A stretch of DNA of 61,818 bases, counting the filler, from Bipalium vagum (lineage: Eukaryota): NCBI GenBank assembly GCA_037834085.1. It is 3 parts of 3 records of this genome, joined end to end, with 100 filler letters (N's around TTAATTAATTAA, not from the genome) between each part and the next. Parts side by side here need not be neighbours in the genome. Positions count along the whole stretch, not along the records: positions 43,687 to 61,818 come from JBBMKC010039671.1; 2 more parts are not named here. One strand, written 5' to 3'. Numbering within the stretch: position 1 is the stretch's first letter; each line of letters opens with the position of its first letter. Made by a program: the position numbers and the translations under genes. Under the pieces are notes generated by a model. The model saw nothing but the letters and a program-made list of their open reading frames with translations, was not told the DNA's origin and made no database searches. Positions 43,687 to 61,818 of the stretch are shown here, piece by piece.

Positions 43687-44082
43687 TATTTGGAATAAGC
43701 TTTTTAACTTTATGTTTTTAAGTACTTTAAACTCTGTGCACTTTTTTATGCATCACCCGTTATATATATATATATTATTATATTATATATATTTGTATAT
43801 TACATAAAAGCTATTAAAGTTTTACAAAATTCCCGTTTTTTATTTATAGGATACTATTACGTTTTATAAATAGGTATTATTTTCATATAAAAAATGTAGA
43901 AATTATGAGAATTATATGTCAAATATATTAATTAATGCACACTGCAGCTAAAATAAGCAATGGTTCGTAGAAATGAAAAGAAACAGTGAGATGCACACAA
44001 CACTTTAACTTTAATTTAAGGTGAACAAAAAAATTACATAAAAATATTAATAGTTAGATGTGAGCTAAAATACCTTATTTAC

Positions 44083-45947
44083 CTGATTCATACTCAATGT
44101 CTGTGATCTTATTTAAGTCAAAATCCGAATTGTGTTCATGGAAATCTATATAGAAAAGAGTCAGAATTGATTTTTTGTGAATTTTTAGCAGCAGCAAATT
44201 TTAAAATGTGAGGTTAAAACTAAAAATTATCTAGCTTTTGAGAAGCTTTAATAGAACCTGTAGAACTCCAACGGAAAATGTTTAAAGAAGTATTATCCAT
44301 TGTCACGTCTGTAATTTCAGCGTTATCCATTATAACGTTATCAGCTTCAGAATCTGTTTTATGATTTATTGTTAAATATTTTTTAATTAAAAAAAATTCA
44401 AGTACTTATAATGAAATATTTAAAAAATAATATTAATATTAATATAATATTTACATTAGCAAGCTTATTTGAAATTTATATATACCTGAAGGAATTTCAA
44501 TATCGGTAATTATATTTATATCTTTGGAATATTGACTACTGACATCTGATAAAAATATTTTATTTTATATTTATATTTTAAAATAATAGCGCAGCAGCAA
44601 ATGATTACCAAATTTAGTTTAATATTAATTATAATAAATTGAATTACTAAAGATTGATAAAACCTAAATTCAAACGTTGAAAACTAAAAAAGACTAGCAT
44701 TTTTAACACAATGATTTTAGAAATAGTGAAAAAAGAATTGAAATTTACCAAAAATTTTCAATGATGTTTCTACAATGTTAATAATCTAATAACAATCATA
44801 TTATTTTTATTGACAAACAAATAAATAATTTTACTTTAATTATTGAATTATAATAAAACAATGATTTTTCAAAAAATATTTTAGATGTCAACTATTCAAT
44901 ATATCTGATTTAAACAAAGTTTCAGTGGTTATATTTTTTGCTATTTTTGAATTGAAAAGACTCGTGAGAAATTTAATGTATTTTTAAATTGGTTTCATAT
45001 TCCTATAAAATGTTAATGCGTAGCAGCAAAAAACTATCATCTCAATTGTGTAATTCAAGAAATTATCATGTTAACATTAGCTAAGTAAATATTAACTAGC
45101 TAAAACAAAATTGTTATTCTTACAAGGTAAAGAGACGTTATTTATAGAAGAAATATCCGCCGTAGCTTCTGAAATATCAGCGTGATCCACTGCATTGTCA
45201 GTGTCAGCATCAATGCTATCATCAACTTAATTGTGAAAAAATCGATTTTCAAATATTAAAAGATAAAATAAGGCCAAAATGGTCTTGAAAGAAACTTATT
45301 TTACCTGTAGGAAAATCGTTATCAGTGATTATAGTACAATCGATATCGAAATTAGAATTTCGGTTTTTGAACTCTGTAAATTAGATATCGATTATAAAAC
45401 TTAAAGTTCAAGAAATTCTTAGCATTAGCCACATTAAGTTTTAAAATCAGTTAAGAGAAAAAACAAATAGACCTTTATCTTTAAAATGAAGAATATTGAT
45501 GGACGGAATATCTGTCGATATTTCAGATATATCATTAGTATTATTATCAGGATCACGTTCTTCATCTTGATATTTAAAAATTTTTTTTAAATGCAAAATC
45601 TTTAGCTTATTGAAAAGGTTTATTTATTTATATACCTGATTTGTATTCAATATCAATAATTATGTTTGAATCAAGATCCATGCTCTGCTGATCACGTTTT
45701 GTGATACCTAATTTTGAAAAATAATGTTATTTAGACAACTTTCAAATATTAGCAGGAGCAGCATCAGTAACAGAAATATTGATTGCAGCAGTCGCATTAA
45801 TAGACTTATACACAAAAACAGTTTTACGAAATGCATTATTTGAGCGAGTGAATTTTAAACTTTAAAAAGTGATGAACCTGGTAATTTAAATGAACGGTGT
45901 TTTACAGGAGATCTATCTGCGGAAAATCCAGTAATCTCCGAAATATC

Positions 45948-45982
<35 letters not shown>

Positions 45983-46377
45983 CATAGTTTAAAATCTTAT
46001 TACTGATTTAAAATAATTTAAATAATAATAATAAAATCAATGAAAAACAAATAAAAGTCAATGTACCTCTTGAATCAATGGACTGAGAAGACATTGTAGA
46101 ATGTTTATCTGAAAATAATGACCCATTGATTAAAAATAATTTTTGTTAAGTCTATAACTTGGGACACCTTTCATATATTCCAGCTCTTTCCAAATGTCAT
46201 CATTTGAAGTGGAAAGTCGATAATCTTGGTCAGTTGGAATGGTCAGTTGACTTTTTTCTGTTGATTGAAAAGTAATTTTCTCATTAAAAATTTTTATTAA
46301 TTTACTTTTTCTATCTATCGATTCCGTAGCATATCCAATATCAATATCAGGTCTAGTAATCACTTTTTGAGAAATTT
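44083..46377 (-). CDS. ANK: Ankyrin linker region: array of 11 symmetric phase-1 mini-exons
   Basis: Predicted exons 46306-46377 (72 nt), 46168-46257 (90; alternative donor gives 99), 46067-46108 (42), 45878-45946 (69), 45636-45707 (72), 45473-45565 (93), 45305-45373 (69), 45124-45225 (102), 44486-44545 (60), 44258-44353 (96), 44083-44145 (63). All are AG/GT-bounded, multiples of 3, stop-free in the frame set by the SDSEDEG exon, and acidic S/T/D/I-rich. Confidence 0.7.
44187..45795 (-). promoter_or_regulatory. Intronic UGC/YGCY clusters (candidate MBNL-type splicing elements)
   Basis: Plus-strand agcagcagca 44187-96, agcgcagcagca 44588-99, gcgtagcagca 45018-28, agcattagc 45421-29, agcaggagcagca 45751-63 and tgcagcagtcgca 45784-96, in otherwise extremely AT-rich introns. 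Confidence 0.5.
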
Positions 46378-46493
46378 CTATCGAAAAAATAAGAAAAATA
46401 TAAAGGCACAACATTTATCATTGGACAACATAAGAAATGAAGAGAAGAAAAGAAAAAAATGATCGGATGGTTTTCTGTTCAGAATTAATTTAC

Positions 46494-49400
46494 CTCCTTC
46501 GTCTTCACTATCAGACACAGCATGTTCTCCCATATTTTCCGGTTTTTCCAAAATAATTATCTCTTCAGTTTCTTCTTCTTCAATTTCCCAACTTATAACT
46601 TCCGTAGTGACCTTTCGTAAAACTTCAAAAATATTCAAATAATGCTGTTTTCGAGCAATGTGAGCAGCAGTCCATCCTTGCTATAAAAACCATAAATATT
46701 TCACATTTAACAATAAAAGTCCATTATAGCTTATTGCAAACAAAACTCATACATTATTCTTAATATTGGGATTGGCACTATTCTCAAGAAGCAGATTGAC
46801 CAATTGCAAGTGACCTTGTTGAGCAGCCAAATGTAAAGGAGTAAATCCGAGTTGAGTTTTCCTATTTATTTCCTCTTGAGTCATTAGACTAATCAAATAT
46901 TTTGCCATGTTCACTTGTCCAAAATGTGCAGCCGTGTGTAAAGGAGTATACTCGGCAGTAGTTGTTGGTAATATATCGGCTTTTTCTGCTACCAAAATTT
47001 TAGCAACACCAACACGATCTTCTTGAGCAGCCAGGTGCATGGAAGTCAATCCGTTCTGAAGTAAATATCGAATTTTATTTTTTAAAATTATTTTACCATA
47101 TTTTTTGACCATTATAAAATCCTTTAGCATAAAAATTTTAATGAAAATATATATCTATACAGGGTGTTCCATTTGAATCCGAACTCCACAAAACATTATT
47201 TGTATAGAACCTGTATTTTAAAGGTAAACTAATGTTTTCAATTGTTCATGATCATTTTCCTATGCTATATGTTATCGTTTAGAAAAATTGTAAATTGATG
47301 TGATCAAGTAATATTGATTTTATTAATAATTTTGCACCTAAACTTTTCGAAGTATTTCAACACTACATTATGTAAATTAAAATATTTACTAATCTAACAT
47401 GAAATATTATAGAAAGAAATACAATCTAAAATTTCATTAAAAATTACATTTTTGTAAATAAATTTAGACTCTTATCTGATATTCCATAACATTTAATTCT
47501 TTTTACAGATAATTGATCTGTAATTAATTAATCCAATTAAAATCGAAACCTCAATATAAAGAAAAGACCTCTTATCATCTATTGGTCTCCGAATTCAGAA
47601 TCTTAATTAAGAAAAATATTATTAAATACACTGTACAATTTATAATAATTTTGACATTTTCATAAATAAAGTGCAATAAAATTCATTTTATTTCGAATAT
47701 GTTAAGCTGTAACAATATCGGACTACGAATAGTATATTTTAAAATACTAATTTTTATCAGTGTCAATATTTTCAAACTATTATATTCGGTTTGTTTTTTA
47801 TACAATTATTAATAATTAATTATTAATTATTATAATTAAAATTCATTTCAGAATATCAGAAGAATTATATAACATTTATTTATAAAAAAAAACGGAAAAA
47901 TTGAAAATGATATATAGAGAAAATGACTACATAGGAATATTTTTTTTCTTTATTAGCAGAAAAAATATTGATTAATATTTTAATATTAAAAATAAAAGAA
48001 TCAATATTTAAAAACTGATCGTTTTAAAGTTTCAAGCCATGTGTGTTATTTGAGTTGTGATGTGAGTTAGTTTGACTTTCTGTTAGTTCCGAGATTATTG
48101 ACATTACTAATCATAAACAGATATCGATCACATAGAATCATCGTAAAATTAAACAAAAAATAATGATTATCAAACCAATTTAATCGCTTCCTATAATTTG
48201 GTTGTAATATATAAAAGCTTTAAAAATCCATGATCATTTTATGTTCATACAGATGAAAAAATATAATTGATAACTAACTTCAATTAAAATACACGACCAA
48301 AAGCAAAAATGAAAATTTAAAATTATAAATATATATTACTTTAGCTTTGTGATTGACATTCGCTTTATTTTGCAATAATAACGAAACCATATCTGAGTGG
48401 CCTTCTTGGCTCGCCAGTTGTAACGGAGAGAAACCGTTTCGTGATTCAGCATTACTGTCAGCATCGGCATCCAAGAGCATTGCTGCCAAATTTTGATTAT
48501 TCTTTTTGGCAGCGATGTGCAACGGGGTATAACCGTTTTTGGCCTAAATATTTCATACAATTCAATAATCCTGCCATAATAATAACATTATGTAAACTAA
48601 AAAATTGATTTAATTTTGAATAAGAAACCTATCGTTTCATAAACCTGATAAAAGAACGTTTTAATACAACAAAATAATAAAAAAAAAATTTCTTTTAAAT
48701 GATATACAAAATCAAATTGAAATTATTTTCACATTCCTTAATTTCACATTTCATGTACTCCAATCCTTTACCATGGAAAAATTAAGTAAACAGGGAATTT
48801 CCAAAGAATAATAATGATCAAAATATTGATTTGTCTGATAACACAAACGAAAGTGATTCAAAGCCGACGTATACATTGATATGCACAATAAATCTAAGAC
48901 AACAAATATCATTTATTTAATCCATCCACTGTCAACGACTATCATATTATTTTGATATGGTTTTAATATTTTCATTCTCATATCTGAAGCACTTTTGAAG
49001 TTTTCAATATTGAAGACAACGTGAGTTGATAATTGTTATAAATATTATGAAACTATATAACAATAATAAACAGAGTTCTAATAACATTATGGAATTTAAA
49101 AGTTAGTCACTATTTTAAAGAATATCGATTTATTGTAATTAGCACAAATAAAATATCAAATTCATGAATAAATAAATATAAATAATATTTTATTTATATT
49201 CATAAATTTTCATTTACTAAAAACTTTTCAATTTATTGACACTACTGTTACAAATTTATTATTTTATTATTTATTATATATTAGTTACACAGTAAAAAAA
49301 CCATAAAACGTGATAAATGAATATTTTCACTTTAATCAGGTGAAAAGATAACAATCTCTATCAAAATTTCTTCTTAAACTTATTGAATAGAATTAATCTC

Positions 49401-52400
49401 TGATTTGATTGGTAATATCGAAGCAAAGTCAATATTTTTAAAAAACTTAAGAAACTTTATTTTATAAAAAATTTCAAAATCGAAATTCTAAATAATTAAG
49501 GTTTCTCTCGCTTAAATTTAGTAAACCCCGAGTTTATTTATAATTTTGTCATAGTAACGGTGTTTTTTGGTTAACAATAAATCATAAAAATGAAATATGC
49601 ACTTAAATTTCTTTATTATAATTCAAGACCGATATTCATAAATAATAAAAAACATTTTTAATAACTATAATAATAATCGTTGAAATTTTCATTAAAAATT
49701 TTGTTGATTATGTTTTAAAAATTATTTCTACTTATTTAAAGTGGTTTAGTTACCTTGCATTTTGGATCTGCTTTATTTTCCAAAAGTAATTTGGCTACCT
49801 TTTCATGATTATAATGAGTTGCCACATGTAAAGGAGTCAGTCCATTTTTCCCAGTAGCATTCGGATTAGCATTATTTTTTAATAGTGACTTAGCTGCACC
49901 AACCTTGTCATACTTTGCAGCAATGTGCAAAGGCGTAAATCCTCTCTAAAAACAAAAAAAATAATAAATACTTTCAAATGCCGTAACAATATTTACCTTT
50001 GTTTCTGCTTCTATTTTGGCTCCATTTTCTAACAATAAGCTGATTGCTTCATTTCGACCTTCTTTGGCAGCTACATGCAATGCCGTATAATTATCTCGTG
50101 TTGCAACATTCGGGTCAGCCCCAACTTGTAAGAACAATGTAATCAGTTCCAAATTGCCTATTTTTGTAGCAACATGTAATGGCGTTTGGTTTTCCTGAAA
50201 TACCATTGAGGACTTATACTTGCATGTTTTGAAAGTTTATGTAATGAATAAAATTGTTTTAGTTTAATATTTCAACCTTTTTTGATAATTTAAGATTTCA
50301 CAGGATTTAGAAAATGTAAAAATTATCTACCTTTTTTCTCAAAAACATGAAATTATATAAATTAATTTATGAAAACTCTAGTTTTGAAAATGAAGTATTT
50401 TCATTTTTTTAATGAGAAAATTGTTTCTCTCAACAATTAGCAGGAAATTTAATATTAAAAATATCCAATTACATTACATTATTGGTTTAAAAATAATGAG
50501 CTTTTTGTTTTTTATGTTAAAAAATTTATTTCATTTAAAAACTGATTACTAAATTCTTTCTTATTAAATAAATATTTATTCTATATTAATAGATATGTTA
50601 AAACAAATTAATTTCAAATTTTTTTGAATACTGTTTTTAATAATTCAAAGTGTTTTTTTCAAAATCTTAGGATATGAATATATAAGATTTATGATAATTC
50701 AATAATAGTATTTATGAAAAGAAGAAAATGATCAAAATTAGTATTAAAACCATCACCTAACAGGTATTTTTTGACTAATTTTCACTAATATAGAAATGTA
50801 ATAATGTATTTCTATTTTATGTCTAATATATAAAAATTATATTAAAACTGAAATTTTATTATTGAAATCTGAATTTCATAAATTTAATGTACTAAAAAAT
50901 TTGTTAAATAAAGATTATATATTATTATATATTATAAAGATTATATCGAAACCAAAGTTAATATGGCCTTCCATTAATTAAATTATATTATCATGTTATG
51001 TGAAATAATTAAAAATATTACATACTAATTACAGATAGTTCATAACAATTTAATATTTGTTCTAAAAAGGTAAATATTTTGTGAATTTGTTGCAAATAAA
51101 GAAAAATTATTAAAATAAAATGTGAAAATTGGTAATATTCAGTAACAAGAAAAATTCAAATGCAACAAGCAGAACCAAACCAGAAAATCAATAGTCATAT
51201 ATCTGTTGCACGTATCTCTCAATTAAATAAATGTCAAATTGGTTTATTGCATCACTTGAATTTCAAAAACATGTTTTTATGGAATTTATTAATCAAAATA
51301 TAATAATAAACAATATTATTTTTAGAGTCTCCGATGTGTTTGGTTGAACTTTTACATTCTACAGAATAGATGAGAAACTTAAAGATTGTTTTAGATTAGT
51401 AAATAACACAAAAAGGATTATTAAGATATATGTGATAAATCAGACTAAACACTCGGCATATCTGTAATTATATAATCGCGACACCCAATGAGGTAATATC
51501 TTTATCCCAAAATCATTTTACGACACATAATTATTATGTAAGCAGAAAATAGTTAAAATAAAATATGGATTAAATGTATGTGATCATATTTTAATGTTAT
51601 ATTTATTTGTCATTTTAAATTAACAATTATTATTGCTCATTAGCATTATAATAAATAGATACACAATTACACTCGCATATATTTTGAGAAAATAATAATT
51701 TGTATTTCAAATAAAAATGAAAATTTATTTATAAATAAATTTAATTGATCAATAATTTATGTAAATGATAAAAACAAGCTTCATTTAATATCTTCTAGAA
51801 ATTAAGGCCCTGATTTTTAATATATTTATATATAATAAAATAATAGTTTTCTGAATTTTTAAATTTTCTCTAATTTCATGAAATCGTTTTTTAGGTAGAC
51901 AGTTTTATACATAAATTGATTAAACATATAAATCAATACAATTCAAAAATATAACTATTGATTATAATTATATTTGACTTTAACAAAATTTTTAAAATAT
52001 AATAGAAAATACAATGAAGATAACAAGTCTTTTATCAAAATATTGTTTTAATAATTATTATTTTATATAGTATATTCAAAAATATTTTAACGAACATTAG
52101 TGAAAATACACAAGTTCATCATATATATATTTACAAGAATTCCATGAGAAATTTTAATTTACCAATATATTAATGAGATTTTAACATCCAAAGAAGTAAC
52201 AAAATTATTTTAACTAAAATAAATCCTGTTTCTGTTTATAAGAGGACTTAAAAATTACACAAAATGTTCTTATCCTCAATTTATAAGAAAAGTAACATGA
52301 ATTTTATTTTTTTAACATAAAGTAATCAAGTTAAAAAGCTGGACCAATTTGATATATTTCATTTATATTTTCGCAAATTTTCTTTTATCCGATGATGAAA

Positions 52401-55400
52401 ATATAAGTAATATGTAATCAAAATTACTCGTGCTTTAGCGTTTGGTAGAGCTCCACTTTTCAATAAAAGTTTCACAGTTTCTGTTTGATTATTTCTCGTT
52501 GCTAAATGTAAAGCAGTTTCACCTCTCATTGTTCCTTGCTCAATATTTGCTCCTTTTTGCAAAAGCATGTTTACCGCTTCTTTAGATCCAATAAAAGCCG
52601 ATACGTGCAATGGCGTCAAGCCGGTCTGAAATGAAAAATCCATTATATTATACTAATTAAGAACAATAAATCAGACAATTTTCAAATATTTTTTAGAAGT
52701 TTTATTTGAAATAAAATAAAAATTCATTTCGAAATATTAAATTTCATCACTTTTTCATAAATCAACAGTATAATTTGTAAATGCATTAATGAAAAAACGA
52801 TGACATTTTCCCAGTTGAATTAGAAACACAATCATTTATTTTATAAAAATATGCAATTTTTCAAAACTAAATATTTATCAATAATGGATTTTAGTTGACA
52901 CATGAGTGTAAATCGAATCAACAAATAATTATTTAATTAATGTAAAGTAGACGAATATTTAACAAATAATATATAAAATAAACATTTATTGTAATGAAAG
53001 AAACATTATTAAATTAATATTATTATATACAATACTTCATTATAATATTGATGAATATTATTTAGACAAAAAAACTAAAATTAAGTTTTCTGTACCAATA
53101 ATTAAAAATACCCACATTGAATAATTATCTTAACAGAAGCTAAGCTCTCATCAAAACTAAACTTTTAGATTTAATAAATAAAAAATATACGACATTATAG
53201 AAACTTTAAAAATAAAATTTAGAAAAAAATAAAAATTAAAAAAAATTGCAAAATTGAATATCTGTACTTCTATTACTTGAATATACAATGTATCAATAAC
53301 AATATTTTTATTATTACACAGTTTGTATTATTAATATTAAAATTCTGAAAAAAATATTTAAACACTGAATTATTATTAAATTCACGTATCAAAAGTAACA
53401 ATATTATATTATCTATTATTAATAACAGGAAATCAATGAGATTGTTATAATTAAAACACTTCAACAATATTTAAATATTAAAAAAATATATGTACATAAA
53501 TATACAATAAATACTGAATATTGGTTCATTATGATTCAATGACTTAAAGTTAAATGAATTGATTATAATTCTTGTCAACAGACTTAATAAGAAAATATAA
53601 CAAGAAACTAAAATCAAAATTAATTTTAGAAAATTATAAAATGAAATCGAAAGTCAAATTTTCAGTTTTCTTAGAAATAACTTTCTAATGAGAAGGCCAT
53701 CCTATAAAAAAGCATTCTTATAATAAATTAAAACAGATCCAAATAAAATGACATTTCATAAATATAATTTTATTTTGTATCCTGTGGCTACAAAGACTAG
53801 AAACAATGTCAAAGATAGTGAAGAGTCCATTATAACTACTGTATTGGTATGTATGTGCTTACATCAGGAAACAGTTATCCGAGATGTCTTCTATTAAAAC
53901 AATAGAACCCATAGAATAAAGAAATGCAAAGTAATAGCATCAGCTATCTGAAATCTGATATTTTTTGTATTAAAAGAGTTTTTATTAATTATTTTACATT
54001 TTATTATCCGAAAATTTTTATTAGGACATTTGTCCATAAAACAAGTAAAATATTTTAAATAATCTACAAATTTCTTACTTAACTAAATATTAAATAAAAG
54101 TTAGGAAAATCCATAATAAATTAACTATTTTGAATGAAAAAAAAACTAAATTTCATTAGACTTTATATCCATAAACTGAATTTTCTAATTTTTGTTTTAC
54201 TCATATTTTCAATATTAATATATTTCTGGTGGTCTGAGAGTAGAAATAACCAAAACCATTTATTATTTAAGATTCCAATTGTAATAGTAATAAGTTTTAA
54301 AATTTATACAAATTCTTGATTCAAGAAATGCATTCTTTTTACTTTATTAGTTGAACAAGGATTTTTAAAAATTTTTTTCGACACATTAATATAAAAGAAA
54401 ATACATAATTTTGGCAATTAAGTATATTTAGAATGATCTCAATTTATATGTAAAAATTAATTACAAACTATCAATGTTTATTCTTAAATGATGAAAAATC
54501 GAAAATTTTTGCATAAAATAAAAAAGAATAAACTCCATTGAATTTTAATATATTCACTGTCAAGGTATTCCAAAAATCATTGAAGAGTATCAAAATCTAA
54601 ATTCTTAATGTTACAAAGGCTATTTGAAATCCTCTACATTAAAAGGTAAAAATAAACAGAAATTCCAAAAATTATTTTTGGTGACAGGAAATATAAAGTA
54701 ATTAGATGTCAAATCAGGAATATTAAAAGAATATGTCAAATAGTTGATTGATTTTTCATGAGTTACTTTTTCATGAGAATTCTATTAAACTATTCTTTTA
54801 AAATATATGAATTACAACATGACCAAATTTTGCTACTAAAAAAAACAATTTTTTATAATAATTTCACATTAATCATTTCACAGATCCAAATAATTAAATA
54901 CTTTATCAATATTGATAAGGTCATAGATATTTTTTATGACCTTTTTGAGTACTGAGGTTACAGAAATCGTATTTTTTATTAAATCTTACGCTATGAAGTA
55001 TTCACAAATTTTACTTAAACGGCCATGTATAATGGAATTCATTAAGGCTCGGGAACACACAATTTAGTGTGAATTTCATTGTATGTAGTTCGACGATCTC
55101 CTAAAATATTTCTGCGAATGATAACATTTTCACCAATAAAAAATCGATGATAAAAAGATATCACATTTGAGCTCATCAATTAATCAATAAATTGTAGTTT
55201 TCAATGGTGCTTTATCACAACCAATTTTTAACAATTCAGACATTGTTTTTGTCTTGACCAAGTTTGAAATATAATTAGTCAAAATTTTTTCTTTGTTATA
55301 TTTATTTTTTGTGCTTTCTGTCTTTCTTAAATTGAATAGATTATTTTAAAAAACATGTATATGAAAAATTGTCTTTGTATGGCCATCATATATTTACTAG

Positions 55401-58400
55401 ATAAACGATTTTTGTGATAGATCATGTTTTCATAACCATTTCCTTAAGAAATTTTGAGCGATACGATTTTTTTGTTTGAAATATAGTATGAAAATCAATT
55501 TATTAATATTATTTTCCAAGAACTAATAATAATAATAACTAATTTATATTGCCATAATATTCAACTCATTAATCACATTAAAATAAATAAATTAGATTAC
55601 CTCTGTCGTTGCTTCAATGGAAGCGCCATATTTTAACAATAATTCAACAATTTTAATTTTGTATTTCTTGCAAGCAATATGCAGTGGAGTGAAACCATTC
55701 TAAATAATTAAAATCATGATCAAAAGATTTTTTTTGACACTAAAATATAATAAAAACACAATAGATACCAGAGCTCTAGCATTTGGATCACACCGCCTAT
55801 CCAATAAAATTCTGGCAACCTTCTCATTTCCATAATGGGCTGTTACATGCAATGGTGTAAGAAAATCCTGTTTAAATGAAAATTATTTTTTCATTAATAA
55901 TACATTGAATAATTAATCTGGTACCGTTGTCGTTTCGTTGATATTGGCTCGCTTTAGGAGTAATATACGGGCAGTATCCTCATAATCCCCTTGAGCAGCC
56001 ATGTGCAATGATGTCAATCCATTCTATAAAAAAAATCAATATATATGAAAATCAAAGATTTCTAAAAAATGATTGATAAATCCAAAAAAGAAATCTTGTA
56101 AAGTTTTCGAATAAATGTCTCCCAATAGTGATTACTTTTTATTTATTTAGGACAACACATAGTGGACATTTTAATTATCAAAATAAGAATATCATTATTA
56201 CTAATCCACCTCGTTCAATTATTTATTATTTTTATATTAGATTGGTTCCAAAAAAAAGTATTTTTAATTAGTTTAAAATTTAAGGTCAAAAACTACAATT
56301 TCTTTCCACGAACATCGTTGTCAATTATGCTACCATTGGTCATTCATTACAAAATCCAATATGTTTATACTCAATGTTTAAAAAATGACTAAAAATATAC
56401 TCATTTTCATATATATAATCAATATTTCTAAATTCACCCTGGTTTTAGCCATGACATCCGCTCCATTATCAATTAGTTTTTCACATAGCTGAGCATGACC
56501 AGATCTGGCAGAACAATGAAGAGGAGTCAATCCATCACGTGTTCGACATGATACCAATGCTCCGGATTCAACAAGCAACTGAGCCATACCTGATCGTCCC
56601 CATTTTGCTGCAACATGTAATGGAGTAATGTTGTTCTGAAAAGAATAAAGTTTTTATTGTTATAAACGTTGAAAAGTAGCACTGACCTTTGCCTGAAAAT
56701 TTACATCTGCTTTATGTTCAATCAATAATTGAGCAGATCTCTCATTTCCATAATGAGCCGCAATATGGAGCGGTGTAAAACCACTCTGAATAAATTGATT
56801 TTTATATTTAGAAACTTCACAAAAATCTTACTGATGACTGTTGGTTAACATCTACTTCAGTACTGTTCAAAAGAAGGTTTACTGCGTTAACGTCGTTTTT
56901 CTTTACTGCTATATGTAATGCTGGAAGTCGCTGTTTACTATGATTATCGTTTTCTAATAATAAGGCCACAACCCGTTGATGTCCTTGTTGTAGAGCAACA
57001 GCCAATGGCGTAAATCCATCCTGATTTAAAATTTAGTAAATATACAAATGAAAGAATATTTCTTATAATATAATAAAGTATTGTAATTTAATATCGATTT
57101 TTTAGTGAGAAAGAGCATTTATTTTTTATCTAAAGATAATTACTAATAATATTATTTTTCTAATAGTATATAATTAATTAAATACGAAATATCAATCTTA
57201 TACATTAAAGGAGTTATGTTTTAAAAATTAAATAATTATTTTTAATTCTTTAAAAATCTAGTCGATTATTTAATACGTAAATGGACTTTTGTCACTTTTA
57301 ATGATCACAAAATCATCTTTTTAGTAATATGTTTAAGTGTCTCACTTTGAATTATATTTAAAATTACTAAAAAAAAATCATGTAGGTAAATTGATATATG
57401 ATGATTAATATTAGTATTTATTTTTATAAAGGTGATTAAAAATGTTCAATAAAAATGACATCAAACAACCAGCAAATTTAATTATATGATAAAAATAAAG
57501 GTTGAAGACAATAAAATCAATAATTCCACATCTAACTAATACACAACTTCAAAGCGACACCAAATAAAAAATTGTTCATAAAATTATTGATTTTAATTGA
57601 GTGCAAGTCTATTAGAAAAATCATAACGTAAGTATAAGCACAATAAAATTCAATACTGAACACAGTACAAAAAATAATATTTTGAAAATATAATTGAATA
57701 ATTAAAAATATACGTATCTGAAAACTAGACAAGCATTAACTATAAAAATTAATATTAGATTATTTCTTGTTTAACGAAAAGTTAACGACTTAGATGAATG
57801 AGTTTCAAGTTATTCAATATTAAACCGATGTGAATTTTATTTAACAATAATTAATAATAACTTCTCTTAAAGAATTTTAAATCGATTTTTTTTACTGTTC
57901 TCAAATCTATGTTCAAAATATTGAATTTTAATTTGTTATAAATTTCGTTTCTTGCCAGTGATTTACATTGATTTAACAAATTTTATAAGAATTTATGATT
58001 GTGTATGTACGGAGAAACGAAAACTATTTCATTATATATATATATATATATCACGGAGAGCGTGACATAGACTTGCTTTTTCTTTTTAACTGATGTATTT
58101 TTAATCAAATAACTTTATACAAATCTTTTAAGATAGAATAAACTGAATCAAAATACAAACGGAAAATTGATAACATATTTGAATAAAGTTCTAGCTAATA
58201 AATCTTTATGTTTAAAATATTATAAGGAAAAATTTTTGACCAATATACTCAAAATTTAAACATCTGATTAACAAGGATAACTGGATTTCAGAAAAAATTC
58301 TAATATTTGCCTAGATTGTTGACATTTTCACTTGATATAGATTTTCTAAAATTCATTTCTTGAAAGTACCACATACTTTTAATAATTATTGTCTTTCTTT

Positions 58401-60466
58401 GTATCAAGTTAATAATGACTGTTTCAAAAACATTAAAAGCGATTTTCCAAATTAACGATAAATTATTCTCTTTTTATCTATTTCCAAACTTATCAGACCA
58501 TAAAATCTTTTAAATAAATTTTCCAGTAACCATTTATCATCTATTAATAATATTGTGACCAATAAAAAATAATGTTGGATAACATTGGTATTTTAGACAT
58601 GTATAATTATGTTGATAAAAACTTGACTTATTTGTAGTTCGTCAACTTCTATCAAACCGTGGTAAAACTTAAAAATTTCACAAATATACTTGAAATGCTA
58701 ACTAGATAATTTATATTTCAACTGTAATTCAATATTTTAAAAAAGATATATTTCAAGTAGCAAATCTTGCTAAATTATTGAAAAAGAAATAAAATTGATC
58801 AATAGTAACAAAGTATAGTTGCACAGGTGCAATAAAAAAGCTACAAAATTAATCAATTGAAAAGAGATTTTCAAAGGCCACAATAAAATTATGATAAAGA
58901 CAACCTAAATACAGTTTCCTTTCCAATACTAATTCTAGACCTAAGATTAAAAAAAAGAAAACAAGATATTTTTATAATAACCAATCAAAATGTTCTCCAG
59001 TTATATGACAAAATATCATTTTTTATATTATTCTATATATTTACTCTATTAATGTTGACAAAAACTCTTGAGCACGTATGTCTTTATGCGATAAAATTAC
59101 AAATATTAATCCTCCAAAGATATTTGTATTACAAATTATTTCGAAATAAAAATCTAAATCCATAGAAAAATTATATAAAAACTATATTGATTATTGTTTG
59201 CCTAATAAATTTATTTAAATTACCTCGGTTGTTATAGTTGGATCAGCTCCATTATTGATTAAGAACGTTACAACATCAAAATGATTTTCTTGAGCTGCCA
59301 TATAGAGAGGTGTAAATCCATTCTATAAAACACGATAAAGTGAAATTTTAAAAAAATTATCCAGGTTTCAGAAAATCAATAAAAAATCTTTTGTAAACCA
59401 GTTAATTACAAAAATCAATTTAAAAATCTAAAACAATACTAACCGTAGATTGAAGATTAACATTTGCATTTTTTTCCACAAGAAGCTTAACGATTTCAAA
59501 TTTTCCAGCCAAACTGGCAATGTGCAATGCTGAATTTCCTTTCTTTGTTGTTGCATCAATGCGTGGTTCACGTTTAATTAGTTCCTTAACAACATCAACA
59601 TGGCCCTCTTTAGCTGCTAAATGCAAGGCACTGAGACCAATCTAAAAATAATAAAAATCGATAATGTTGATAAATCAATGTTGAAATGTTTCTTTTTATA
59701 GAAAATTATTATTTATTACAAGATAATATTTTTGATTTCAGCAGTTCTTTAAAAATTATTGACAGACACCATAAAAGCTTTATTTATTAAAGAGGATTTG
59801 AAATGATATGTAAATAACAAATTGAAAATATTAATTTACACTTGATTTTCCATTATTTTGATTAATAAAAACATGCACATTGTCTGTTAGATTTATATAC
59901 CAGGAAAGCAAATGGTAAATGTAGACGTATGGAAATATTTTCACTTGGAACAGACTAGGAACATTGTGCAATAGAAGACATGCATTTATAAGGACGAAGC
60001 GCAATGAATTACTCAGAAGAGAAAAATATTGATATTTTCAGTTAGTCTCTGGGAAATATTGAACAAAATTCACTAAATTAAAGTTATGAAATACTGGAAA
60101 CATTAATTCTAATAAAACATCATTCTGAAAGATTTAAACGAAATTATCAACAGAAAAATTGTTTTTAGTTTTCTGTAAGAGTTCAAGAACACAAAAATGT
60201 TACAATCTTAACAATTAAACATTTACTATAAAAAACAAAAATAATTCTTAACGTATTGGAAGGTAAAATATATGATAGTAGATTAATGTCAAAATGTTAT
60301 AAATTAATAATTGTTAATAACAACCATAGATAAAAAATAGATTAAGGAAAATAATTTAGCTTACATCATTGCACGTATTTATATCGGTCCCGGTTTCCAG
60401 AAAGTCAATTATTTTTGCTAAATTTCCTGCTCTAGCAGCTCGTAGAAAGCTATGATTCGATTCGCT
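46494..60466 (-). CDS. ANK: Ankyrin (ANK2/unc-44-like) membrane-binding domain: 24 ANK repeats, 15 exons; 5' exon and ZU5/death domain not found
   Basis: Predicted exons 60365-60466, 59444-59641, 59224-59322, 56832-57020, 56687-56785, 56438-56635, 55925-56023, 55769-55867, 55601-55699, 52428-52625, 49997-50194, 49754-49945, 48340-48543, 46753-47055 and 46494-46680, mostly 99/198-nt phase-0 units. Diagnostic canonical-ankyrin peptides [46 protein letters not shown] and PENM...SDSEDEG. Confidence 0.95.
54990..55150 (-). mobile_element. Short mariner remnant in ankyrin intron
   Basis: [25 protein letters not shown] resembles the second HTH of mariner transposase. Confidence 0.35.
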
Positions 60467-61520
60467 CTAAATATTTTTAAAACTGAAATTATTACCAGCT
60501 TAACTGATGTACATTTTAAATAAAGCTGACATTAAAACTTAACTAAATAGAACTTAATTATATAACAGATAATCATGATTAAATAAAATTAAACATACAT
60601 TTTCACTATTGGATTTTGTCATTGTTGATAACTAAAATCTTCAAATGATAGTAAATATATATCTGATAAATTAAAACTAAAGAAAAATCATTGATTAATT
60701 GACTAAATATAAACAAAGACTTTCACTAAATATTATCAAAAATAATCTCTTTCTAATTACTGAAAATTGAACTATCTATTTTTCCTTATAAAATCTTAAA
60801 TTTATAAAGAAATTTATTTTTACAGATATTAGTTATTTTAAAAGAATTCATCATCAATACATGTATATAAAACTCAACAATAAAAATAAGATATATGCTA
60901 ATTGAAAAATTTGAAAGAAAGGTTAGACTTCAAACAACTTTTGTGAATGATTAAATATATCTTTACATAATGAATTATATTTAATAAATAAATTCCGTAA
61001 ACTATTTCCTAGGCAGTTAAGGACCATTATTGTCACCATAAATTTCATGTTTAAAGTCTAAAATTTTCTGTATTACCTTATTTTAATTTATATATCACTC
61101 GTTGATCAATCCCCTTAATTCGCATGTATCTCATGTACCTCCGTGTCATTGATTTGATTTCCACTCTTTGAACTCCAAATTCTCTTATGTGTGGTGTTAT
61201 TATTCTCTTTATCTTTGCTAATACCATCAAAATAACGACTATTCTGTTACTTGACTTAATAGATTCATAATTTTATCTTTATTTTTTCTGGTGTTCTTAA
61301 AAATACCTATTCAATGTCTTAGAAATTTACATCAGCAAATTATATGAAGCAATCTATATCAATAAAAATATTTCCATTTTTAATGGACATAGAATTAAAT
61401 ACTTTAATAGGCTATTTATTGCATATTTATGGATAAGTAGAGTCGCAACCACTTCAACAGTGAAAATCACCAATTCCAGTTTAGAGAACATTTATGATTT
61501 CAAAAAATTATTATGATCTT

Positions 61521-61580
61521 ATTGGAGGAAAAGATATCATCATTGAAATCGATGAGACAAAACTAGCTAAACGAAAGTAT
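61521..61580 (+). mobile_element. Merlin/IS1016-family transposase remnant
   Basis: IGGKDIIIEIDETKLAKRKY matches the Merlin GG...VEIDE(S/T)...KRKY motif; interrupted at 61584. Confidence 0.7.
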
Positions 61581-61583
61581 CTA

Positions 61584-61818
61584 TGTTAAGATCCTAAGAG
61601 GGTGGTTAAAGTGCTGTTAATATACGGAGCTTGAGTTTAGCTTAGGTCTCAACGGTTGAAGGTTGCTTAAGGACGTGTTCGGTTAATTAAATAAACTGAG
61701 AAAACGAATTAGGTTTAATACTTTTATTGAGATCGAATTAAAATTTATTATTACAAATGAGTGATAACAATTCTGACCGAATGTGATTTTATTAATTAAG
61801 ATTATTATTTATAAAAAT
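61584..61818. mobile_element. LTR-like element inserted in the Merlin remnant, running off the window
   Basis: Begins TGTTAAG exactly where the Merlin similarity stops; related copy at about 41310. Confidence 0.45.

Follow-up and report, generated by a model that had tools for sequence, protein, structure and literature searches.

A Bipalium vagum ankyrin gene of the canonical type lies on the minus strand of positions 43687-61818 of the window (the whole stretch of DNA that was analysed, 61,818 nt with filler included). This part of the window comes from record JBBMKC010039671.1 and has a GC content of 24% and 0 N. The linker of this ankyrin, which follows the last ankyrin (ANK) repeat, is probably encoded by an array of duplicated phase 1-1 mini-exons. 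Every exon open reading frame (ORF) tested from the membrane-binding domain matches Pfam Ank families, and residues 18-841 of the Macrostomum ankyrin P0031 form a colinear tblastn chain that runs from 60463 down to 46474. Thus the entire 24-repeat ANK domain is contained within 43687-61818. Two features that define canonical ankyrins, 24 ANK repeats and an acidic AI-c-like segment right after repeat 24, are both present. The exons of this part of the gene are as follows.

46747..60466, minus strand: membrane-binding domain exons, i.e., the N-terminal exon and the ANK-repeat exons as far as the penultimate one (Pfam Ank matches and tblastn chain)
46494..46680, minus strand: E0, the last ANK-repeat exon, with an acidic AI-c-like tail and the phase-1 donor G|GTAAAT (alignment to 5y4f_A and identity to the metagenome contig L001, described below)

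Residues 2-58 of E0 align to residues 365-419 of the human ankyrin-2 (ankyrin-B) chain 5y4f_A with an E value of 0.0048, and the part of 5y4f_A that is matched consists of R24 and the fold-back AI-c segment, as this segment is defined in PMC5779224. The alignment bears out a preliminary description of the locus, which had placed the mini-exons after ANK repeat 24. At the other end, the contig stops 396 nt past the last mini-exon, E11, and the ZU5 exon is placed past the contig edge, downstream of E11. No Pfam family at or near the curated cut-off was found in the intronic ORFs.

Rebuilding of the exon chain downstream of E0 yields eleven open segments, E1-E11, on the minus strand from 46377 to 44083. 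All eleven have an AG directly before them and a GT directly after, and all can be read through in the frame that the phase-1 donor of E0 dictates. Their lengths range from 42 to 102 nt, all are multiples of three and all are phase 1-1; the introns of the array measure 59-578 nt. The segments were identified from the exon chain together with the additional evidence given in parentheses.

46306..46377, minus strand: E1, 72 nt, phase 1-1, ancestral linker exon (kept in L001)
46168..46257, minus strand: E2, 90 nt, phase 1-1, with the linker motif NDDIW..EYM (motif also in flatworm ankyrins)
46067..46108, minus strand: E3, 42 nt, phase 1-1, Ser-rich, unique (acceptor and donor good)
45878..45946, minus strand: E4, 69 nt, B-type, the weakest candidate (B-family alignment, peptide similarity)
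45636..45707, minus strand: E5, 72 nt, A-type (four-copy repeat family D1)
45473..45565, minus strand: E6, 93 nt, B-type (B-family alignment)
45305..45373, minus strand: E7, 69 nt, A-type (repeat family D1)
45124..45225, minus strand: E8, 102 nt, B-type (B-family alignment)
44486..44545, minus strand: E9, 60 nt, A-type (repeat family D1)
44258..44353, minus strand: E10, 96 nt, B-type (B-family alignment)
44083..44145, minus strand: E11, 63 nt, A-type, the last exon ahead of the contig edge (repeat family D1)

The rebuilt chain agrees with the preliminary description in the number of mini-exons (at least 11), in their lengths of 42-102 nt, divisible by three, and in their phase; its outer coordinates, 44083-46377, are exactly the end of E11 and the start of E1. 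That nine of the eleven exons are missing from the ORF track was likewise correctly reported. With the default cut-off of 60 aa, the sole ORF listed spans E1 and E2, and therefore the other nine are missing. Together the eleven exons encode ~276 residues, which carry a net charge of -35; Asp, Ile and Ser are the commonest, followed by Thr and Asn. The acidic character ascribed earlier to the module is evident in E4-E11, where 48 D/E residues vs 15 K/R are found among 208.

To serve as controls, AG..GT phase-1 open segments of 42-120 nt were collected from intron sequence of the same gene totalling 9.9 kb, which gave 57 chance segments. The GC content of the mini-exons is 0.32, vs 0.21 in the chance segments (p 8e-6); compared with the introns that separate the mini-exons the values are 0.327 vs 0.202. 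A codon log-odds score trained on the ANK exons places the mini-exons above the chance segments (p 3e-5), with E8 showing the top score of the eleven, 0.74, and the acidic fraction is 0.19 in the mini-exons vs 0.04 in the chance segments. GC at codon positions 1, 2 and 3 is 0.40, 0.34 and 0.245 in the mini-exons, an order that is the same as in the ANK exons (0.54, 0.36 and 0.26); the corresponding values in the chance intron segments are 0.18, 0.22 and 0.245.

The exons E4-E11 alternate between two types. A repeat search recovers the 3′ halves and donors of the A exons E5, E7, E9 and E11 as one four-copy repeat family, and alignment of the B exons E4, E6, E8 and E10 shows a central core in common. 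Scored against shuffles, the peptides give z values of 3.9-7.2 for A-A pairs and 2.5-6.0 for B-B pairs, and of 0.4 for A-B. The four-copy A family and the z values within families confirm that these eight exons alternate as a duplicated pair, as had been proposed earlier. Alignment of the A and B exons together with their flanking introns had been put forward as a check, and here the homology reaches an intronic element ~45 nt upstream of the A exons. Five consecutive stretches of 331-413 nt can be aligned, in the order B exon, intron, UGCUGCUGC/branch-site element and A exon. The A exon of the third unit has decayed, and the B exon of the fourth unit is no longer recognisable. Similarity between neighbours is beyond chance, homology extends into flanking intron and the phase is the same throughout, which are the marks of tandem duplication. 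From these alignments, E4-E11 appear to have originated by about five tandem duplications of a 330-410-nt two-exon unit, followed by birth and death of exons. The diverged 330-410-nt unit was undetected by the tandem-repeat program TRF.

44905..44940, minus strand: decayed A-type exon, open in phase 1 (weak nhmmer match, unit alignment and translation)

This decayed copy is situated in the 578-nt intron that separates E8 from E9. The donor has changed from the ancestral CAG|GT to CAG|AT, and the GC content of the copy, 0.21, is intron-like. A weak alternative donor at 44892 would yield a 48-nt phase 1-1 exon.

The intronic element that forms part of the duplicated unit contains a UGC-rich motif, UGCUGCUGC, and its copies are located as follows.

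44188..44196, minus strand: UGCUGCUGC element, 43 nt upstream of E11, with a CUAA core after it that resembles a branch site (motif search and A-unit alignment)
44591..44599, minus strand: UGCUGCUGC element, 46 nt upstream of E9 (motif search and A-unit alignment)
45752..45766, minus strand: UGCUGCUGC element as three overlapping one-mismatch matches, ~45 nt upstream of E5 (motif search and A-unit alignment)
45418..45432, minus strand: degenerate UGCUGCUGC copy upstream of E7, with the GCUAA core retained (repeat family D9 and A-unit alignment)
45020..45028, minus strand: orphan UGCUGCU element, a copy of UGCUGCUGC, in the E8-E9 intron ahead of the decayed A exon (motif search and unit alignment)

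When up to one mismatch is allowed, UGCUGCUGC has six matches in 43687-61818 vs 0.63 expected. None of the six is on the opposite strand or outside the linker introns, and no other exon of the gene is accompanied by the motif. Conservation among the A units is 0.64-0.71 in the 3′ half of the exon, 0.76 at the donor and 0.57-0.72 in the intronic GCUGCUAA element, while the remaining intron is at ~0.3, near the random level; within the element the GCUA core is invariant among A units. Three overlapping UGCU (YGCY) motifs are present 43-46 nt upstream of E5, E9 and E11, and exons regulated by MBNL are characterised by at least two YGCY motifs close by (PMC3643581). In its sequence the intronic element would read as a distal branch site that comes after three overlapping YGCY motifs, and it bears a resemblance to the elements of MBNL-repressed exons. 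Structure modeling of the introns upstream of A exons gave folds that are no more stable than shuffles, and UGCUGCUGC is predicted to be unpaired in three of the four folded introns (those of E11, E9 and E5). A local hairpin at the UGC element was rejected on the basis of these folds, and docking/selector RNA pairing was rejected as well, there being no complementary copy on the gene strand.

Sequences from other species were searched for counterparts of these exons. Of 30 matches in a search with E0, those that are named proteins are all from flatworms and are mostly ankyrins; the genera are Dicrocoelium, Paragonimus, Opisthorchis, Calicophoron, Schistosoma, Heterobilharzia, Spirometra, Schistocephalus, Mesocestoides, Protopolystoma and Macrostomum. 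The same search leads to a 90-residue ORF, P0001, on the 733-nt metagenome contig L001 (ENA ERZ27257134, k141_653513). Between the window and L001, E0 is 87% identical in DNA and 100% identical in protein, with synonymous substitutions only. E1 is also present in L001, where the AG and GT are kept, with a 3-nt in-frame indel and 73% nt identity; the introns are largely unalignable, and L001 stops 42 nt past E1. The contig shows that a close relative is present, with low coverage, in a metagenome assembly that is either environmental or host-associated, and a more distant ankyrin fragment, P0004, comes from the nearby-accession sample ERZ27256860. The NDDIW..EYM motif of E2 is found at the same place in the linkers of Dicrocoelium and Paragonimus ankyrins, and in a looser form in cestode ankyrins. 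Because E1 is kept in L001 and the E2 motif occurs in trematode and cestode ankyrins, E1 and E2 are considered ancestral linker exons. A comparison of E2 with solved structures gave no match, and equating the E2 motif with vertebrate AI-b stays a lead.

The exons E3-E11 behave differently in these searches. No orthologue of E3-E11 emerged from word searches in which the reading frames around E10, E1+E2 and E8 were the queries, nor from JGI metagenome contigs when these were scanned with E0. The A-exon and B-exon profiles had no meaningful match in 14 long relatives, about ten of them canonical flatworm ankyrins. The module thus appears to be lineage-specific, as the preliminary description had it, on the strength of the A/B profiles and of the E10 and E8 word searches. 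In three more distant loci (L002, with 41% GC, L003 and L004) the introns are long and A/B exons could not be recognised. A derivation of the A exon from a conserved acidic Trp motif that precedes ZU5 was also considered, and was rejected because of the lack of a profile match in the 14 long relatives.

Two protein models from Mesocestoides corti, P0016 and P0017 (A0A5K3FYR6 and A0A5K3G1I2), are identical except for a 58-residue in-frame segment. This segment is found directly after the donor equivalent to that of E0, and the junction residue shifts as a phase-1 symmetric cassette predicts. The cassette contains the ancestral E1/E2-like part, including the conserved linker motif. It should be noted that both models are named "WASH complex subunit 2" by their source but are in fact ankyrin linker fragments.

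The splice sites were compared by means of a donor position weight matrix (PWM), which was built from 15 ANK-exon donors with leave-one-out scoring. The scores of the ANK donors extend from 2.6 to 10, with a median of 6.1; those of the A-type donors fall between 6.8 and 9.0, and those of the B-type between 3.8 and 5.4. The donor of E3 scores 8.2 and, together with its acceptor, is good; the exon has a GC content of 0.33 and a codon score of -0.26.

In the arrangement that we propose, E0 closes ANK repeat 24 and carries the acidic AI-c-like tail, and at least 11 phase 1-1 exons would then encode a disordered linker that leads towards ZU5. E1 and E2 would be the ancestral exons of this linker and E3 a unique one, and E4-E11 would have been added by duplication of the two-exon unit. 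The duplicated exons would insert an acidic stretch of ~208 residues, rich in Asp, Ile and Ser and next in Thr and Asn, between the membrane-binding solenoid and the spectrin-binding module. E1 and E2 are almost certainly spliced into mRNA, and the A and B families as a whole are very likely to be so; for E3 and E4 splicing is favoured with less assurance. The balance tips slightly towards at least some of E3-E11 being cassette exons, whose inclusion would set the length and charge of the linker. In that case the UGC-rich element conserved upstream of each A exon would function as a regulated silencer or as a branch-site module. Free combinatorial use of the mini-exons seems unlikely. A fuller scheme, in which the A/B units would be independently regulated cassettes through a muscleblind-type factor acting at the UGCUGCUGC/branch site, with the A/B motifs as pseudo-ligands of the ANK groove and the number of exons grading auto-inhibition, is speculative and held to be improbable.

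Several observations weigh against the array being an expressed and regulated part of the gene. The AG..GT phase-1 open segments that occur by chance in the control introns amount to 5.75 per kb, so the splice and phase pattern is in itself common, and the case has to be carried by composition, periodicity, duplication and conservation. Codon scores are slightly negative for E3, E5, E7 and E9. The B-type donors are inside the constitutive ANK range of 2.6-10, and therefore their "weak sites" are a mild hint only. Since no orthologue of E3-E11 was found, conservation between species is limited to E0-E2. A search of public sequencing runs for the locus produced a single DNA-like run and no RNA run, and the protein library searched with E0 contained no transcript-derived spliced protein of this lineage. 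The pooled pN/pS (nonsynonymous to synonymous differences) of the A paralogues is 0.57 and that of the B paralogues 0.69, values below 1 that fit selection on the A/B peptides but that are estimated from very short, protein-guided alignments with pS at 0.6-0.7, near saturation. The last of these points concerns the splice sites of E4. Its acceptor is inside an (AT)22 repeat, its donor, GTTCAT, is poor, and an internal out-of-frame GTAAAA donor scores equally.

45943..45986, no strand assigned: (AT)22 microsatellite abutting and overlapping the E4 acceptor (tandem-repeat scan)

The (AT)22 repeat seems to have replaced the acidic 5′ half found in the other B-type exons.

The array may instead be constitutive throughout, in which case it would simply be the encoding of an expanded disordered linker, and phase 1-1 would be a by-product. 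This is the most serious alternative, although on the whole a doubtful one. The preliminary description had pointed out that, with symmetric phase, any subset of the exons can be skipped without a frameshift; as an indication of skipping this was overstated. Tandem duplication of exons within a phase-1 context forces phase 1-1, an in-frame duplicated exon being necessarily symmetric, and hence the phase is not evidence of skipping. The A-type donors match or exceed the ANK donors, and even the weaker B-type donors are within the constitutive range. The size of the product is not abnormal either, because the linkers of other flatworm ankyrins vary from ~110 to >400 residues, compared with ~276 here. 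It had further been stated that the ankyrin linker is auto-inhibitory and alternatively spliced in other animals. For this region of the protein, alternative splicing is only loosely established, as the vertebrate AI-b and AI-c segments are reported to be retained in all documented isoforms (PMC5779224), which again is in keeping with constitutive use; the pair of M. corti models is a closer precedent. However, the intronic UGC element is as conserved as the coding core, something that plain constitutive introns seldom show, and it is absent from all other exons of the gene. In addition, the B donors are systematically weaker than the A donors, and of the two annotated models of a tapeworm orthologue one has a phase-1 cassette at this junction and the other lacks it. 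The conserved UGC element, the A/B donor asymmetry and the M. corti cassette models can be taken as indirect hints of regulated inclusion.

A second alternative is that some or all of E3-E11 are unexpressed, being decaying relics or chance segments in one long intron, so that the mRNA would pass from E2 or E3 to an exon past the contig. The frequency of chance segments agrees with this, as do the visibly dead A-type copy, the disrupted acceptor of E4 with its competing out-of-frame donor, and the lack of an orthologue and of an RNA run in the searches made. However, GC content, codon-position periodicity and acidic content set all eleven exons apart from chance segments, and the paralogue pN/pS is below 1. 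All eight A/B copies keep the open frame, the AG and the GT, whereas the dead copy displays what decay looks like at this locus, with its GC of 0.21 and lost donor. Lack of expression is therefore considered improbable. Mutually exclusive use, in which a transcript would take a single A copy and a single B copy in the manner of classic tandem exon clusters, is most improbable of all: the exons are indeed tandemly duplicated, of similar size and identical phase, with a conserved element upstream of each A exon, but the two types are interleaved and not grouped, nothing enforces exclusivity because all lengths are multiples of three, the six motif matches are all on the gene strand with no complementary docking sequence, and the upstream introns are without unusual folding.

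Comparison with known systems places the duplicated array closest, in its design, to the PEVK region of titin, where differential splicing of many short repetitive exons sets the length of the segment (PMC6469411). Both would encode a charged, disordered spacer from short, repetitive, tandemly duplicated exons that are hard for gene finders. However the array described here has 8-11 exons vs ~100 and consists of two alternating types in a two-exon unit; it is acidic and Ile/Ser-rich, not composed of Pro-Glu-Val-Lys, it belongs to an ankyrin adaptor and not to a muscle spring, and its splicing is predicted only. In position and possible function, the closest system would be the auto-inhibitory linker of vertebrate ankyrin-B/G, whose fold-back onto the ANK groove inhibits the binding of targets (PMC5779224, PMC3663501). 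The position and the protein family are the same, and the acidic tail of E0 aligns to AI-c. The ankyrin-B linker, however, is described as a single divergent exon, and A/B-like repeats were undetected in the other ankyrins examined. Among flatworms, the M. corti models are relatives matched by E0, with a putative phase-1 in-frame cassette after the same donor, but their cassette is the ancestral E1/E2-like part with no duplicated A/B array.

The schistosome micro-exon genes (MEGs) are also flatworm genes with runs of short symmetric exons whose skipping preserves the frame. MEGs encode small secreted proteins, mostly from exons of 3-81 bp with long introns between them (bioRxiv 10.1101/2023.06.21.545858, PMC4350168). 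In contrast, the exons here are 42-102 nt with introns of 59-578 nt and form a segment of a large cytoskeletal adaptor. Membership in the MEG family was rejected, since neither the exon and intron sizes nor a large cytoplasmic adaptor as host fit. For the intronic element, a likeness is found in Tpm1 exon 3, which is repressed through MBNL by UGC/CUG clusters (PMC3643581, PMC2853123). Here too an overlapping UGCU (YGCY) cluster adjoins a GCUAA-type branch site upstream of the exon. The likeness is one of sequence, and it implies neither muscleblind binding nor a direction of regulation.

The tandem duplication of a two-exon unit, which expands a disordered linker and carries with it a co-duplicated intronic element, is considered real. 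The opening of the membrane-binding groove is under the control of the ankyrin linker, and with exon units that are duplicable and frame-neutral a lineage would have a simple genetic means of adjusting the length and charge of the linker, and possibly auto-inhibition. The array would also be a compact natural system for the joint origin of cassette exons and their regulatory elements. Since ORF-based annotation misses nine of the eleven coding exons here, gene models of such AT-rich genomes are prone to truncate or misjoin disordered regions.

Two minor observations concern the wider setting of the gene. At least three sequence types of the E0-like region are found in neodermatan flatworms, one represented by P0003/P0009, one by P0010/P0022/P0008 and one by P0019/P0024/P0025, and these types suggest that several ankyrin paralogues exist in this group; the gene of the window is nearest to the type of the E0-like region shared by Dicrocoelium/Paragonimus and cestodes. 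Near the contig edge, a TA-rich low-complexity stretch occupies 43757-43807.

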